Positions 34,496 to 41,828 of a stretch of DNA of 64,000 nt are shown here, one piece after another (the stretch's first letter is position 1; each line of letters starts with the position of its first letter). A program made the position numbers and the translations under genes. The notes under the pieces are model-generated. The model saw only the letters and a program-made list of their open reading frames with translations, did no database searches and was not told where the DNA came from. The DNA comes from Podarcis tiliguerta (Eukaryota): NCBI GenBank assembly GCA_965153285.1, contig OZ229113.1; one strand, given 5' to 3'.

Positions 34496-37033
34496 CTCTA
34501 TTTCTCTGTCCTCTATGTATTAAAACCCTATGCTAAAGCTCTCATACTTAAACAAACAGGGTGAAGTTCTCCCATATTCATGCATGCATCTTAAGTCCAA
34601 TAATTGCTTTGTGATAATCTCTTCAGGGTACTTAAACAAAAGCCGGCCCATTAACTTCAGTAGAGTCAGGCTTGCTCTTGGCATTATTCATACTGTGCAG
34701 TTAAACATTCAAGGCAGTCTTAGATACATACTGGATTTTTAAATGTTAATGATATGATATAACCCAACACTTCAAACAACTCAAAGAAATAATTAAGGGA
34801 AATTCCATCATTTCTGGATCATAATTTTCTTCTTGCTGCTGGATTGCTTTGCCCATATTATCAAAGCTGAACAGGTTCTCTGATTTTAAACATGTGCTAC
34901 ACATTTTTCAGCGTATGTATGTATCTGGGATGGCTGGAATCATATAAGATAGAACGAATGACTGTCGAAATTATCAGAAAGACAATAGACTGTCAACATG
35001 CTAATGTGAGCACAATGAATGAAAATGAATACTTTGCTTCCAAGAAACTTGGAGTAGTTTGGAGAGAAGGAATAGATTACCTAAATACATTTAGGTACTG
35101 AGTGCAATTTAGAATATTTTAGCTTCACATTAATGCGATCAAAGGGATTTCAACAGAACACAAGAGTGCATCCTTTGGACATGTCACCTGTGTTTGATTC
35201 CTTTCTCCATCTAATCCAGATCAGTGTTTCTCCATCTGGGAATAGATCAGAAATTCAGTTCAGATTGTGTTTAAAGGAGAACATCCCAAATGCACACTTT
35301 CCAGAACACGGCCATTCTTCAAAATTCACACTTCTCCAAATTTTGCAATGTAGTCATCCAGCCAAGCAATGTATACAAAAATGCATATACTAGGGTAAAG
35401 TGTGTCTAAAATGCACATTTTAGTGAAAAGAACATAGTAAAAGGCATTGTATTAATCAAAAAATGTGTATATTAGGCAAGATTGCATACAAAAATGTTCG
35501 TATTAATAGGAATTTGCAATGAAATGCTGGCTCATTTTCATGAGGACGTTTTTCGGGGGAGCGGTTAAACCCAAACAGCTGTGGAAATGTGAACTGAATT
35601 TAACAGTGGAAAAAATGAAAAATGTAGAGGAATCGAGATTGAGAGATTTACCCTTCCCAAGATCAGATTGCAGTTATCATGTCATGTCTTGAATCTTAAC
35701 CGCCCTCTTGAAGATTGGTGATAGCCTACCAAACCACTGGCAGAAATCTCACCCAACCACTTCATTATGGGCAGTTTATATGAATATTGTAATTTAGAGT
35801 TGGGGAAAACATGGTCCACTGTGACAGCAGAAGGTCTCAAAGTTGGCCCTATGATTCTTTGGACTGTGCCTGTTGCCACTTCTTTGATACTTCACAGTGA
35901 AGTCAGCCTCGCATGCTATTCTCAGCGGTAGAAAATGATTCTTATCCTTGTCATGAAAAGTCCAAGAGCGATTCTGTTCGAACAACACACCTCCACAAAA
36001 CTCCAGAGCTACTTCTGCAAAATGCACAAGGCTGCCAATACACAACTGCACCCTATGATGTCTTTGAAGTCATCTGCCCAACAGCTCAGGTGCTTTAAGA
36101 GAGGACACTGAAGGCATTTTTGGTGTTGCATCGCTTGCTATTATTGCTATGCATGAACTGCCCATCAGACCAGACTGGCGTCAATGTAATTTGGTACTTT
36201 GTAATAGAGGGCAATAGGAGAGGAAAGGCTTCCATTGGAAAAGTGTGGGCCATCACACAAGAAGCTATTTAGAGTTCAGTGTGTGAAAAATTTATAAGAG
36301 GTGATTCACACAACACTTCAATATTGCTACGTCAAGCCATGGTCTATGAATCACTCTTTTAGCAGCGTATTTCCTCTAGAGAGCCATTTGAGAAATGCCA
36401 GGGTGAGATGCTTTTCAGAAGTGCAGAGCTCTGAGTGAGTAATCTATATTTCAATTCAAGCACAACTCTGTGTTTTTGTACATTCCACGTCTCCCAACAA
36501 AATGCTATCTCACCCTGAGAACCCATTGCAGTTTTCATTTCGATATATACCATTAAGCGCAAGGAGTTTAGCCATTGCAATTATGACAAAATAAATATCA
36601 AACAGAATGCCTGGAAACATCAGGTCTGATGTTGATGGCAAACTATAGCCATAGAAAGGTGTCTGAAATAGACCAGAGACTTGGGTGACAGGGAGGACAA
36701 ATTTATATGCTATTTTTAATATAACTGCGCAAGCGCAAATAAAGGTACACCGCCTCTTTGAAAATTAGTGTAGGAACTGCAGGTAGTTCATGTTATTTTT
36801 AAAATTGTATATAAAAGTGGATGTACAAAATTCAGCAGCCTGCATTATGAAAGGCTGCTGATAATGTTCTGAGCAAATACTATATTACTGTGCACTTTGG
36901 TTTTGTATCGCTCTCTGCAGAGTCCCTGACATATATATATATATTTATGTTTATTATAAGAATAAATGCTGTGTACAATATGAAATACAGAGGTTTTGCT
37001 ACAGTCACTGAACCCTAACGACACGTTCTCAAG

Positions 37034-38062
37034 ATGGAGGGGGAGGGAACAGCTGCAGTCGCCTGCAGTTCCTGCGCAATGCTTGCCATCTTGCCAAAGG
37101 TTGCAGGCAGCTTTACATGCAGCAATTGCATGTTGATTGCCCTCCTAAAAGACAAAGTCCAGCAACTGGAGGAACGTGTAGCTACACTCCAAAGAATTAG
37201 AGAGCTGGAGCTCTTCTTGGAAGCAGCAGAGCACACCGTCTCCACCAAGGAGGAGACAGGAGACTCCCCTGGGAAGGAGGCTAGTTCACCAACACAGGAG
37301 CCCGATATGTGGAGAAACGTGACTCAAAGAAGTAGGAGGCCCAGGGTTCGCTCTGATTGTTTAGAAATACACAATCGCTTTGAGGTCCTCTCCCCTAGCA
37401 TGGAAGACGAAGAGCAGACTCCATTTGAGGATCTCTCCCTCATTACAGTCGATCAGGTATATGAAGATGAGCAGCAAAGTCAGTCCTCAGGGAATGTGCA
37501 GGCGACCTTGGAACGGACCGCTCACGGAAGAACCCTGACCAAACCTAAGAGGAGGCGTGTAGTGGTGATAGGGGATTCCCTACTGAGGGGAACAGAAGCA
37601 GTGATCTGTGGGCCTGACAAGATGTCTCGGGAAGTGTGCTGTCTCCCCGGGGCTAAGATCCAAGATGTAACTGAACGACTGCCACGAATCATAAAACCCA
37701 CTGACAAATACCCCTTCCTCTTGGTTCATGTGGGAACCAATGACACTGCAAGCAATAGCCTCCAGAAGATCAAAAGAGACTACGAGGCTCTGGGCAGGAA
37801 ATTGAAGCAATTAAATGCACAAATCGTCATCTCATCTGTCCTCCCAGTTGAACGACGTGGCCCAGGGAGAGAGGGGAAAATAGTGGAAGTAAACAGCTGG
37901 CTTCGCAAATGGTGTAAACAGGAACGGTTTGGATTCTTAGATCACGGACTGCAGTTTCTTGAAGATGGACTTCTGGCAAGCGATGGGCTGCACCTCACAA
38001 CGGTTGGGAGGAATGTTTTTGCCAAAAAACTCAGAAACCTCATCAGGAGGGCTTTAAACTGA
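37034..38062 (+). CDS. CR1 ORF1p (342 aa): Zn-finger/leucine zipper plus SGNH/GDSL esterase domain
   Basis: CSSC..CSNC, heptad [15 protein letters not shown], esterase blocks VIGDS, HVGTND and DGLH; ends RRALN*. Confidence 0.95.
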
Positions 38063-38067
38063 CTAAT

Positions 38068-40989
38068 GTGGGGGAGGGAGACAGTGCTCCTGAAGGTAGG
38101 AGTCTATCAACTGATGAAGATGATCATCCAAATGTCATAGACCAAATGGAGCAAACAGCAAGCAGACCTAGTGGTGGGAGGAAAAAATCCTTAAGTAAGA
38201 GACACAGGGGAATGACTAATGGACTTCAATGTCTGTACACTAATGCACAAAGCATGGGAAATAAACAAGATGAGCTTGAGCTCTTGGTACAGCAAACTAA
38301 ATATGACATAATAGGCATCACTGAAACCTGGTGGGATAAGTCCCATGATTGGAATGTAATAATGGAGGGATACAATCTATTTCAGAGAAACAGACCAGAC
38401 AAGAAAGGAGGAGGAGTGGCGTTATATGTCAGGGATGTGTATACCTGTGAAGAGATCCAAGATTTAGAACCTCAAAGCCAAAGTGAGAGCATTTGGGTCA
38501 AAATTAAGGGAGAGAAGAATAACAGTGACCTCATTGTGGGAGTTTATTATAGATCCCCAAGCCAAACGGAGGACATAGATGATGCCTTCCTGGAACAGAT
38601 GGCCAAGCATGCAAAAGGAAGGGAGATAGTAGTAATGGGGGACTTCAATTACCCAGATATTTGTTGGATGTCAAACTCAGCCAAGAGCATAAGGTCAAAC
38701 AGATTCCTCACTGGCCTTGCAGACAACTTCATTGTCCAGAAAGTGGGAGAAGCAACAAGAGGAACAGCCATTTTAGATCTGGTCCTAACCAATGTCGATG
38801 ACCTGGTTAATGGGGTAGAAGTGGAAGGATCATTAGGCGCAAGTGATCATGCTCTTCTGAAGTTTACTATACAACGGAAAGGAGCAGCCAAGCATACTAG
38901 GACTCAATTTCTTGACTTTAAGAAAGCCGACTTCATAAAACTTAGGGAAGTGCTGGGTGAGATCCCATGGACAGTAATACTAAAAGGAAAGGGAGTTCAT
39001 GATGGCTGGGAGTTTATTAAGAGGGAGATAGTAAAAGCACAACTTCAGGCAATACCAATGAGACGGAAACATGGAAGGTGCCTAAAGAAGCCAGGGTGGC
39101 TATCTAAAGAACTTTTAACTGAGTTGAGATTAAAAAAGGATGTGTACAAAAAATGGAAAAGGGGGGAAACCACCAAAGAGGAATTCAAACAAATAGCCAG
39201 CACGTGTAGACACAAAGTCAGAAAAGCTAAAGCACAGAATGAACTCAGGCTTGCTAGAGAGGTTAAAAGCAACAAAAAAGGCTTTTATGGGTATGTTCGT
39301 AGCAAAAGGAAGAACAAAGAAACAGTGGGGTCACTCAGAGGAGAAGATGGTGAAATGCAAACAGGGGACACAGAAAGGGCTGAACTCCTCAATGCCTTCT
39401 TTGCCTCAGTCTTCTCCGATAAAGAAAACAATGCCCGACCTGAAGAATTTGGAGCAAATGATTCAGCAGAGAAAACACAGCCCAGAATAACTAAGGAGAT
39501 AGTACAAGAATACTTGGCTAGTTTAGATGTATTCAAATCTCCAGGGCCAGATGAACTGCATCCAAGAGTATTAAAAGAACTGGCAGATGTGATCTCAGAA
39601 CCACTGGCAATCATCTTTGAGAATTCCTGGAGAACAGGCGAAGTCCCAGCAGACTGGAGGAGGGCAAATGTTGTCCCTATTTTCAAAAAGGGGAAAAGAG
39701 AGGACCCAAATAATTACCGCCCAGTCAGTCTGACATCAATACCAGGGAAGATTCTGGAGCAGATCATTAAGCAAACAATCTGTGAGCACCTAGAAAGGAA
39801 TGCTGTGATCACCAATAGTCAGCATGGATTTCTGAAAAATAAGTCATGTCAGACGAACCTGATCTCATTTTTTGACAGAATTACAAGCCTGGTAGATGAA
39901 GGGAACGCAGTGGATGTAGCCTACCTTGATTTCAGCAAGGCATTTGACAAGGTGCCCCATGATATTCTTGTAAAGAAGCTGATAAAATGCGGTCTTGACT
40001 ATGCTACCACTCAGTGGATTTGTAACTGGCTGACTGACCGGACCCAAAGGGTGCTCATCAATGGTTCCTCTTCATCCTGGAGAAGAGTGACTCGCGGGGT
40101 GCCACAGGGTTCTGTCTTGGGCCCGGTCTTATTCAACACCTTTATCAACGACTTGGATGATGGACTCAAGGGCATCCTGATCAAATTTGCAGATGACACC
40201 AAACTGGGAGGGGTGGCTAACACCCCAGAGGACAGGATCACACTTCAAAACGACCTTGACAGATTAGAGAACTGGGCCAAAACAAACAAGATGAATTTTA
40301 ACAGGGAGAAATGTAAAGTATTGCACTTGGGCAAAAAAAATGAGAGGCACAAATACAAGATGGGTGACACCTGGCTTGAGAGCAGTACATGTGAAAAGGA
40401 TCTAGGAGTCTTGGTTGACCACAAACTTGACATGAGCCAACAGTGCGACGCGGCAGCTAAAAAAGCCAATGCAATTCTGGGCTGCATCAATAGGAGTATA
40501 GCATCTAGATCAAGGGAAGTTATAGTGCCACTGTATTCTGCTCTGGTCAGACCTCACTTGGAGTACTGTGTCCAGTTCTGGGCACCACAGTTCAAGAAGG
40601 ACACTGACAAACTGGAACGTGTCCAGAGGAGGGCAACCAAAATGGTCAAAGGCCTGGAAACGATGCCTTATGAGGAACGGCTAAGGGAGCTGGGCATGTT
40701 TAGCCTGGAGAAGAGGAGGTTAAGGGGTGATATGATAGCCATGTTCAAATATATAAAAGGATGTCACATAGAGGAGGGAGAAAGGTTGTTTTCTGCTGCT
40801 CCAGAGAAGCGGACCCGGAGCAATGGATCCAAACTACAAGAAAGAAGATTCCACCTAAACATTAGGAAGAACTTCCTGACAGTAAGAGCTGTTCGACAGT
40901 GGAATTTGCTGCCAAGGAGTGTGGTGGAGTCTCCTTCTTTGGAGGTCTTTAAGCAGAGGCTTGACAACCATATGTCAGGAGTGCTCTGA
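38068..40989 (+). CDS. CR1 ORF2p: APE endonuclease plus reverse transcriptase (true start uncertain; first AUG at 38146)
   Basis: EN motifs YTNAQS, ITETW, GDFN and SDH; RT motifs [26 protein letters not shown] and FADD; CR1 C-terminus LEKRRLRGD. Confidence 0.97.
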
Positions 40990-41828
40990 TGGTGTTTCCT
41001 GCTTGGCAGGGGGTTGGACTCGATGGCCCTTGTGGTCTCTTCCAACTCTATGATTCTATGATTCTATGATTCTATGATTCTATAATGCCATTAGGAAAAT
41101 AAAGGCTCGTTTTTTTTTAAAGAACAAAATCCTTATTTATATTCTGTATGAGTTATCGCCTAATGAATTGTGATGCAGTATTCCTTGTCTTTGCCTCTTC
41201 CGCGACAATGTTTACTCTTCGCTATGATTAATTAGCAGGTAATAAAGTCTATTTTGTGTTTTGAAGCCAAATTGTCTACTAAGTTCTTCAGTGCTCCGTC
41301 ACTTGGGGATAAAATGCTAAACCACCATTCCAGGCTTTAGTTTCCAGGCATGCATGCTGCCATCATTCACCACCATGGAGGGATAGAACTTTGAGCACTA
41401 ATGACTTAAATGAATCGGGATGCTGTTGTGGAAGAGGAGCTCTGTGGGAGCAATGCAGCTTTGAATGTGTAGCAAAGAGATGGATCAAGCTGCATGGATC
41501 CAGCCGCAGTCTTCTAATCATCTTCGAGATAAGAAACTAAGCTGCTTCTTGCTGGATCAAACCAAAGGCTAACGCCGTCCAGCATTCTTTCTCCCACAGT
41601 GGCTAACTAGGACATAAAGACAAAAACTGTGTGTTCAGGCTTTGTTTGTTTTTAATTAATGTGATACAATTTTTTATGGTTCTATACTGCATGTCAATGG
41701 TTTCTGCTGTTGTTGCTTGTGAGCCACCCAGATAATTTCAGCTATGGGACAGCTATACAAACGGGATTTTTTACTTTAGAGAAAAAGTGAGGAAAACGCT
41801 TAGAATATTACATACGGATACAGAATAG

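Follow-up and report, generated by a model that had tools for sequence, protein, structure and literature searches.

We analyzed an intact full-length long interspersed element (LINE) of the CR1 type in a 64,000-nucleotide stretch of the lizard Podarcis tiliguerta (contig OZ229113.1 of assembly GCA_965153285.1), hereafter called the window. Of particular interest was the junction of its two open reading frames (ORFs), where an initial annotation, made from the letters alone, had proposed a programmed −1 ribosomal frameshift. The element occupies positions 37013..41083 of the plus strand, on which all features described below also lie. Its 5′ end is approximate, the limit having been set at ∼37013, since the contigs of other copies diverge upstream of this point. 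The 3′ terminus is an octamer microsatellite, TCTATGAT, present in 4.6 copies (41047..41083; Tandem Repeats Finder); we take octamer repeats of this sort to be typical of CR1 3′ ends. An AT-rich/TA microsatellite lies directly 5′ of the element (36930–36960), and a T-run directly 3′ of it (41100–41120).

ORF1 (37034..38062) encodes a protein of 342 amino acids with an N-terminal Cys motif, a coiled-coil-like region and a C-terminal SGNH/GDSL esterase. The protein matches the Pfam family Lipase_GDSL_2 (PF13472, E 9.9e-10), and its residues 176–338 align to the structure of the zebrafish ZfL2-1 ORF1p esterase (PDB 4c1b, E 2e-23). The closest proteins are those of Podarcis muralis (94% identical) and Zootoca vivipara (82%). 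ORF2 matches Exo_endo_phos (PF03372, E 2.1e-16), RVT_1 (PF00078, E 1.2e-34) and also PF14529. Its apurinic-type endonuclease domain (38224..38850) begins at 38224 with the N-terminal motif LQCLYTNA, and the reverse transcriptase (RT) domain, defined by RVT_1, spans ORF2 residues 541–757 (39688..40338). With an esterase ORF1, an endonuclease–RT ORF2 and a 3′ end made of octamers and not of poly-A, the element belongs to the CR1 clade. The esterase is the sole identifiable type of ORF1 in CR1 and L2, and among CR1-group elements poly-A tails are confined to Zenon (PMC13343379).

The letters at the junction of the two ORFs are AAC TGA CTA ATG. ORF1 ends with GCT TTA AAC TGA, and the heptamer T_TTA_AAC (38053..38059), which codes for the final L and N of the protein, stands in the X_XXY_YYZ phase and is directly abutted by the stop TGA (38060..38062). 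Among the 342 codons of ORF1 this is the only in-phase X_XXY_YYZ site with A or T as Y. The initial annotation had placed the heptamer at the same coordinates and ORF2 in the −1 frame, open from 37963; both statements are correct, and the frame stays open to 40989. After the proposed slip, the −1 frame (38059..40989) would be read through a 55-codon linker, the endonuclease and the reverse transcriptase to a stop at 40987–40989. The predicted fusion has 342 + 976 = 1318 amino acids, in agreement with the earlier estimate of ∼1318.

Translation of the window also bears out what had been noted about start codons. Past the heptamer, no AUG occurs in the ORF2 frame until 38146..38148, 29 codons downstream. 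This AUG and the one at 38212 both precede the endonuclease motif, and the former is a possible alternative start in the window copy; other families do not conserve it. Another AUG, at 38066, belongs to the ORF1 frame, where it begins an ORF of a mere 24 codons. The junction has no stop–start overlap of the SART1 UAAUG or calicivirus type. Stop-codon readthrough was rejected, as a TAG at 38138 ends the 0 frame just 25 codons past the TGA, short of ORF2. Skipping of the 2A type was rejected as well, the window linker having no NPGP motif.

Relatives of the junction were collected at the protein and at the DNA level. The search with the ORF1 protein listed 80 relatives from lizards, snakes, turtles, frogs and birds, and …LN is the ending of nearly all those that are full-length. 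When 24 diverse ORF1 proteins (32–84% identity) were aligned, the terminal L and N proved invariant, while the preceding residues vary. At the DNA level, we used 80 loci from metagenome contigs of bird- or turtle-like hosts. Most of them come from one sample and are evidently host DNA; two other ENA assemblies together contributed two, and a second JGI sample three. The ORF1s of these loci are closest either to penguin CR1 ORF1 (60–81%) or to a JGI protein and, more distantly, to turtle ORF1s. By ORF1 tail and linker length the loci fall into at least six groups (ER, DR-long, DR-58, WR and two single ENA loci), and the window copy makes a seventh. No relatives were found in viral contigs scanned with ORF1 and the endonuclease, or in genome contigs scanned with ORF1.

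ORF2 is in the −1 frame in all seven groups. Where a locus scored in another frame, it was a group member with later indels or a copy too decayed for its junction to be read. The linker from the heptamer to LKCxYTNA, the endonuclease motif that contains a catalytic Asn, measures 29, 31, 55, 58, 70 or 89 codons and has thus been reshaped several times. As the −1 frame is kept despite these different lengths, all indels between families must be multiples of three. Stops in the linkers of 41 copies number six in the −1 frame, as against 114 (0 frame) and 118 (+1 frame). The linker is thus open in the −1 frame only, and neither a variable frame offset nor stops ahead of the endonuclease, two of the observations that the initial annotation had named as contrary to its proposal, were found. 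In most ER and DR copies, a TGA shuts the −1 frame two codons upstream of the heptamer, so that the window for a productive shift essentially coincides with the heptamer in those copies. Of the 36 open linkers, moreover, 16 are free of AUG codons from the heptamer to the endonuclease motif, and in none is there a −1-frame AUG further upstream. ORF2 of those families therefore lacks a conventional start before the N-terminal motif of the endonuclease. The argument from the missing AUG is family-specific.

The junction is also conserved at the level of nucleotides. The ORF1 terminus lay inside the locus in 74 cases; TTTAAAC is present in 65 of them, and in 60 it is directly followed by a stop (TAG, TGA or TAA). 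The remaining junctions comprise three with the heptamer and a mutated stop, two with the heptamer behind an upstream indel, seven with one-base changes and two that are unrecognisable. Dead copies decaying around a fixed ancestral state are expected to give this pattern. In all seven groups the fixed form is NNT TTA AAC with a stop behind it, and in 17 representatives C-TTTAAAC-T forms the sole contiguous invariant block within 120 nt whose mean column identity is 63%. The stop abutting the heptamer is as conserved as the heptamer itself; its identity varies, and the −1 frame correspondingly reads CUG or CUA, both of which encode Leu. In one WR-family copy (L005:3507–3530) the heptamer and stop are doubled 15 nt apart (TTTAAACTGAAGGATTTTAAACTGA), a small local duplication.

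As a control for synonymous sites, we compared the last 170 ORF1 codons of seven family representatives, whose ORF1s are 31–53% identical to that of the window. Among the 36 columns with an invariant residue of degenerate coding, a single codon is kept in three, which correspond to an Asp and to the Leu (TTA) and Asn (AAC) that end the protein. Each of the remaining eight columns of invariant Leu shows two to five codons, and TTA makes up 6.9% of the Leu codons in these ORF1s. The T before TTA is present in every case despite changes of the residue (GCT, ACT, TCT, GAT). Since TTA and AAC are fixed while codons of other invariant residues vary, selection acts on the letters and not on the amino acids alone. 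The alignment of junctions across CR1 families that had been proposed earlier thus gave the predicted result, TTTAAAC invariant at synonymous sites with ORF2 always in −1, and no synonymous variation in A-L-N was found across the seven groups, either in the metagenome junctions or in the window. Being both the sole in-phase site of ORF1 and invariant at synonymous positions in divergent CR1 families, the heptamer is more than a chance occurrence.

The same data bear on the possibility that the heptamer is a by-product of the protein sequence. The C-terminal Ala-Leu-Asn would then be needed by the protein, with its codons frozen by descent or mutation bias, and ORF2 would be translated from an AUG of its own by leaky scanning or internal entry. 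The invariance of L and N at the protein level is what one would see in this case, and suitable AUGs do exist, the two of the window before the endonuclease motif and the one of DR-long at the endonuclease start. However, synonymous sites have diverged at 33 of the 34 other invariant residues, though not at TTA and AAC, and TTA is a rare Leu codon. Nor does a requirement of the protein explain a T that is kept ahead of TTA across different residues, or the 16 linkers that have no AUG upstream of the endonuclease motif. Finally, the esterase structure aligns to residue 338 of 342, which puts the last residues at or beyond the end of the fold. We consider this explanation improbable.

The protein tails extend the comparison to more hosts. 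A profile search of 1.84 billion representative proteins, of which the best 150 matches were listed, gave 215 esterase ORF1 relatives when pooled with the earlier set. The ending LN is found in 107 of the 215, with 45 distinct final pentamers, in line with the statement in the initial annotation that RALN is a common ending of CR1 ORF1. ORF1s ending in LN occur in a sawshark, poison frogs, turtles, snakes, lizards and birds; that of the sawshark Pristiophorus japonicus ends in …GEELN. Among the matches listed, K, Q, M and W are never found directly before the terminal L, and E is found there in three proteins only. This bias fits a need for U at the last position of the preceding codon, or for G as in G_UUA_AAC, but could also be produced by a position-specific amino acid preference. 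The site of equine arteritis virus is G_UUA_AAC, and the rare …E-L-N tails of CR1 would fit it, as Glu codons end in A or G. Five more distant esterase ORF1 proteins, encoded on ENA contigs, end in …QGN and not in …LN. If their codons are CAG GGA AAC, these tails could represent G_GGA_AAC, which is likewise a classical slip site and is the one found in PEG10.

At the junction, F-K-L, the −1-frame reading of TTT AAA CTN, appears in chimeric gene models of a stingray, a tortoise and a third source. We also noticed pieces of CR1 ORF1 or ORF2 inside annotated host genes, namely in isoforms of NUBP1, steryl-sulfatase and hydroxyacid oxidase 2. A CR1 protein is deposited under the name "Replicase polyprotein 1a [Varanus komodoensis]", and an "SGNH/GDSL hydrolase [Klebsiella pneumoniae]" on a 2.9-kb contig is a CR1 ORF piece, probably due to vertebrate contamination.

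Transcripts of the junction were examined in raw RNA-seq reads from two runs that carry the same species label as several of the DNA sources; the depth at the junction was 30–45. No inserted or deleted letter and no joint was seen in the reads near 38040–38150. At 5% of reads or more, therefore, no joining of the two frames takes place in the RNA, and correction of the frame by splicing, editing or polymerase slippage is ruled out at that level. Nor did the depth show a step across the junction (in run X23, ∼46 (31.6 + 14.6) before it versus 44 (29.4 + 14.4) after it), and no read starts piled up downstream; both observations disfavour an internal promoter.

These reads are relevant to a further reading of C-TTTAAAC-T, as a signal that is not translational: either a TATA-like promoter for an ORF2-only transcript, or a site for RNA packaging or protein binding. 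TTTAAA does resemble a variant of the TATA box, the motif is conserved as a nucleotide sequence, and CR1 lineages without ORF1 exist. On the other hand, the RNA-seq depth is equal on either side of the junction with no pile of read starts downstream, an ORF2-only transcript would still have no AUG in many families, and such a signal leaves unexplained why the ORF2 frame opens exactly at the motif. We regard this explanation, too, as improbable.

Several other features of the RNA-seq data were observed. The depth rises approximately tenfold toward the 3′ end of the element (37000–41000 of the window), with mates in both orientations. Both features are expected if 5′-truncated copies co-transcribed in host transcripts supply most of the signal, and the coverage is therefore no proof of a full-length sense CR1 RNA. 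Nearly all RNA reads have T at 38029 and 38111, where the window copy has A and C, respectively. In the DNA contigs, T accounts for ∼27% of the depth at 38029 and ∼96% at 38111. The C at 38111 looks like a private substitution of the window copy, and 38029 may mark a subfamily difference.

Taken together, the anatomy of the junction and its conservation suggest that the U_UUA_AAC ending CR1 ORF1 is probably a conserved, selected site of −1 programmed ribosomal frameshifting. The support that we can add to the frameshift interpretation of the initial annotation is thus comparative: anatomy and nucleotide conservation are observed, and from them we infer the slip itself, its frequency and its stimulator. 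Most ribosomes would decode Leu-Asn, reach the adjacent stop and release ORF1p. A minority would slip back by one base, either in tandem (UUA to UUU, AAC to AAA) or through the Asn tRNA in the P site with the stop in the A site. The slipped ribosomes would read CUG or CUA as Leu and cross the linker of 29–89 codons into the endonuclease and the reverse transcriptase. The product would be an ORF1p–ORF2p fusion, ∼1318 amino acids long for the window copy, made at a low fixed ratio to ORF1p in the manner of Gag and Gag-Pol. A LINE such as L1 requires very little ORF2 protein, and a low efficiency without a strong stimulator would suit such an element.

The proposed site resembles the ORF1a/1b junction of coronaviruses, toroviruses and arteriviruses, which has the same heptamer in the same phase and likewise gives access to a downstream polymerase frame. 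The viral sites are followed, 5–7 nt downstream, by a strong pseudoknot, and their efficiencies reach tens of percent. In CR1, by contrast, no conserved structure was found, and a 0-frame stop stands immediately after the heptamer. The proposed synthesis, from one RNA and at a fixed ratio, of a first protein associated with nucleic acid and of a fusion with the RT, with the heptamer in a short overlap, also resembles Gag-Pol of retroviruses and LTR (long terminal repeat) retrotransposons and the domesticated PEG10 (G_GGA_AAC; PMC5009743). However, CR1, a non-LTR element, lacks Gag and forms no particle; it has a coiled-coil esterase as ORF1p, and it also lacks a protease that could free the RT.

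A number of points tell against frameshifting or limit the evidence for it. First, the window copy and DR-long have ORF2-frame AUGs before the endonuclease, the AUG of DR-long sitting right at the endonuclease start, so that independent initiation is possible there. Second, a test of codon positions for coding constraint in the ER linkers had no power: the shared variants were distributed 10/14/14 over positions 1/2/3, and significance was not reached by the positive controls either (ORF1, p 0.10; endonuclease, p 0.22). Third, no stimulatory RNA structure was found. In the window, the 91 nt that follow the heptamer fold less well than shuffled sequences (z +1.29), RNAalifold gives weak consensus folds for the ER and WR families (−10.3 and −6.6 kcal/mol) with almost no covariation, and the window junction has no match in Rfam. 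The WR family alone has a plausible hairpin, in which the G-rich tract described below pairs with CCCATCCC, as judged from the minimum free energy of each sequence against shuffles. Fourth, ORF2 can apparently work unfused: a cited paper reports, according to its title, a low dependency of ZfL2-1 (L2 clade) retrotransposition on ORF1p, and CR1 variants without ORF1 exist (PMC13343379). Fifth, the evidence at the DNA level comes from the lizard window and a few sauropsid-like metagenome hosts, mostly of one sample; the comparisons with turtles, frogs, snakes and the shark rest on protein tails and on readings of gene models.

The initial annotation had itself called the stimulator weak, and the window fold and the lack of a conserved structure agree with this. 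It had also sketched a pseudoknot. Its segments are present where they had been placed, GGGAG at 38072–38076 facing CTCCT at 38087–38091 and AGAC at 38079–38082 facing GTCT at 38102–38105, but the fold is neither predicted nor conserved. Overall, the fold predictions do not indicate the canonical stem-loop or pseudoknot 5–9 nt downstream, and none is conserved across families. The sole downstream feature common to all CR1 families examined is a G-rich tract 8–12 nt after the heptamer. In the window it reads GGGGGAGGGAGA (38070..38081, 11 nt past the heptamer), encoding G-E-G-D in the −1 frame; other forms are GGGGGAAGGGGA and GGGGGATGGGGGG, and the encoded residues are G-E/D-G-D/G. The Gly codons of the tract are mostly GGG, and no predicted structure accounts for it. 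A G-quadruplex was rejected by inspection as unlikely: most families have only two close G-runs, with further runs 9–21 nt away, and the ER and DR families are unable to form four tracts with loops.

The main rival of frameshifting is termination followed by reinitiation without a slip. Some 40S subunits would stay on the RNA after the ORF1 stop and restart in the −1 frame at a non-AUG codon or at a downstream AUG, and C-TTTAAAC-T with the G-rich tract would be a signal for retention or restart. The process would be akin to that of L1, where restart is AUG-independent, or of SART1, where it uses UAAUG. This would account well for an abutting stop that is as conserved as the motif and for the failure to find a frameshift-stimulating structure. 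Many families have an ORF2 with no AUG, which L1 tolerates; Alisch and colleagues are said to have described this for L1 in 2006. Where the stop is TGA, the −1 frame reads CUG across it, which is a near-cognate start, but the families with a TAG stop, which are more numerous, have CUA, which is not. There is also no overlapping AUG, and reinitiation after an ORF of 342 codons is normally very inefficient. Reinitiation also leaves unexplained a perfect in-phase X_XXY_YYZ heptamer identical to the coronavirus and arterivirus site. We therefore consider it unlikely, if less so than the two alternatives discussed above.

Human L1 and silkworm SART1 are similar to CR1 in that ORF2 is translated from a bicistronic LINE RNA. 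In both, this depends on events at the ORF1 stop, and the AUG of L1 ORF2 is dispensable (PMC3708506). Unlike CR1, L1 and SART1 have no slippery heptamer at the junction and make separate proteins, while the CR1 junction has a canonical slip site and no ORF2-frame AUG. For two-ORF non-LTR elements in general, the mechanism of ORF2 translation has been called unclear (PMC3708506), which leaves room for reinitiation in CR1 too.

Returning to frameshifting, a more specific and clearly more tentative proposal may be made. CR1 elements with an esterase ORF1, which dominate among the transposons of birds and reptiles, may make RT only as a transframe fusion, through a slip at U_UUA_AAC that has been kept from sharks to birds, that is, since the ancestor of jawed vertebrates. 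The slip might be stimulated by the abutting stop and the G-rich tract and not by a pseudoknot, in an arrangement similar to Gag-Pol. The tract might be read by a trans-acting factor, for example, the Cys-motif region of ORF1p, and the system could then possibly regulate itself.

Recoding in non-LTR elements has some precedents. Similar to the CR1 proposed here, the Drosophila telomeric element HeT-A is reported to need a frameshift; however, the shift lies within gag and not at an ORF1–ORF2 junction, the element has no RT, and a conserved U_UUA_AAC is not mentioned for it in a review of recoding (PMC5009743). The same review names, as non-LTR cases, only the gag frameshift of HeT-A, TART and the reinitiation of mammalian LINEs (PMC5009743). 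In CR1, L2 and Rex1 of invertebrates, 2A-like peptides at the N-terminus of ORF2 are another form of recoding just upstream of the endonuclease (PMC3708506). They split the products of one ORF, whereas the proposed CR1 site would join two. The words frameshift and overlap are absent from a 2026 survey of the CR1 group (PMC13343379). In the open full-text literature, we found no paper linking CR1 to ribosomal frameshifting; a brief remark in the 1997 papers on chicken and turtle CR1 is possible.

How ORF2 of a LINE is translated from a bicistronic RNA is a long-standing question, to which only partial, and differing, answers have been found for human L1 and for silkworm SART1. CR1 is the most abundant transposon family of birds, crocodilians, turtles and many squamates, and its slip site, letter-perfect and deeply conserved, makes the question directly testable by a simple reporter. 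If the frameshift is real, it would be the first ORF1–ORF2 frameshift fusion in a non-LTR retrotransposon, and a case of widespread cellular −1 frameshifting without a classical downstream structure. Annotation would benefit too, as many genomes carry chimeric or truncated gene models at the CR1 junction. For the biology of the family, it would mean that the active CR1 enzyme is a fusion of esterase, endonuclease and RT, which bears on cis-preference and on the assembly of the ribonucleoprotein.

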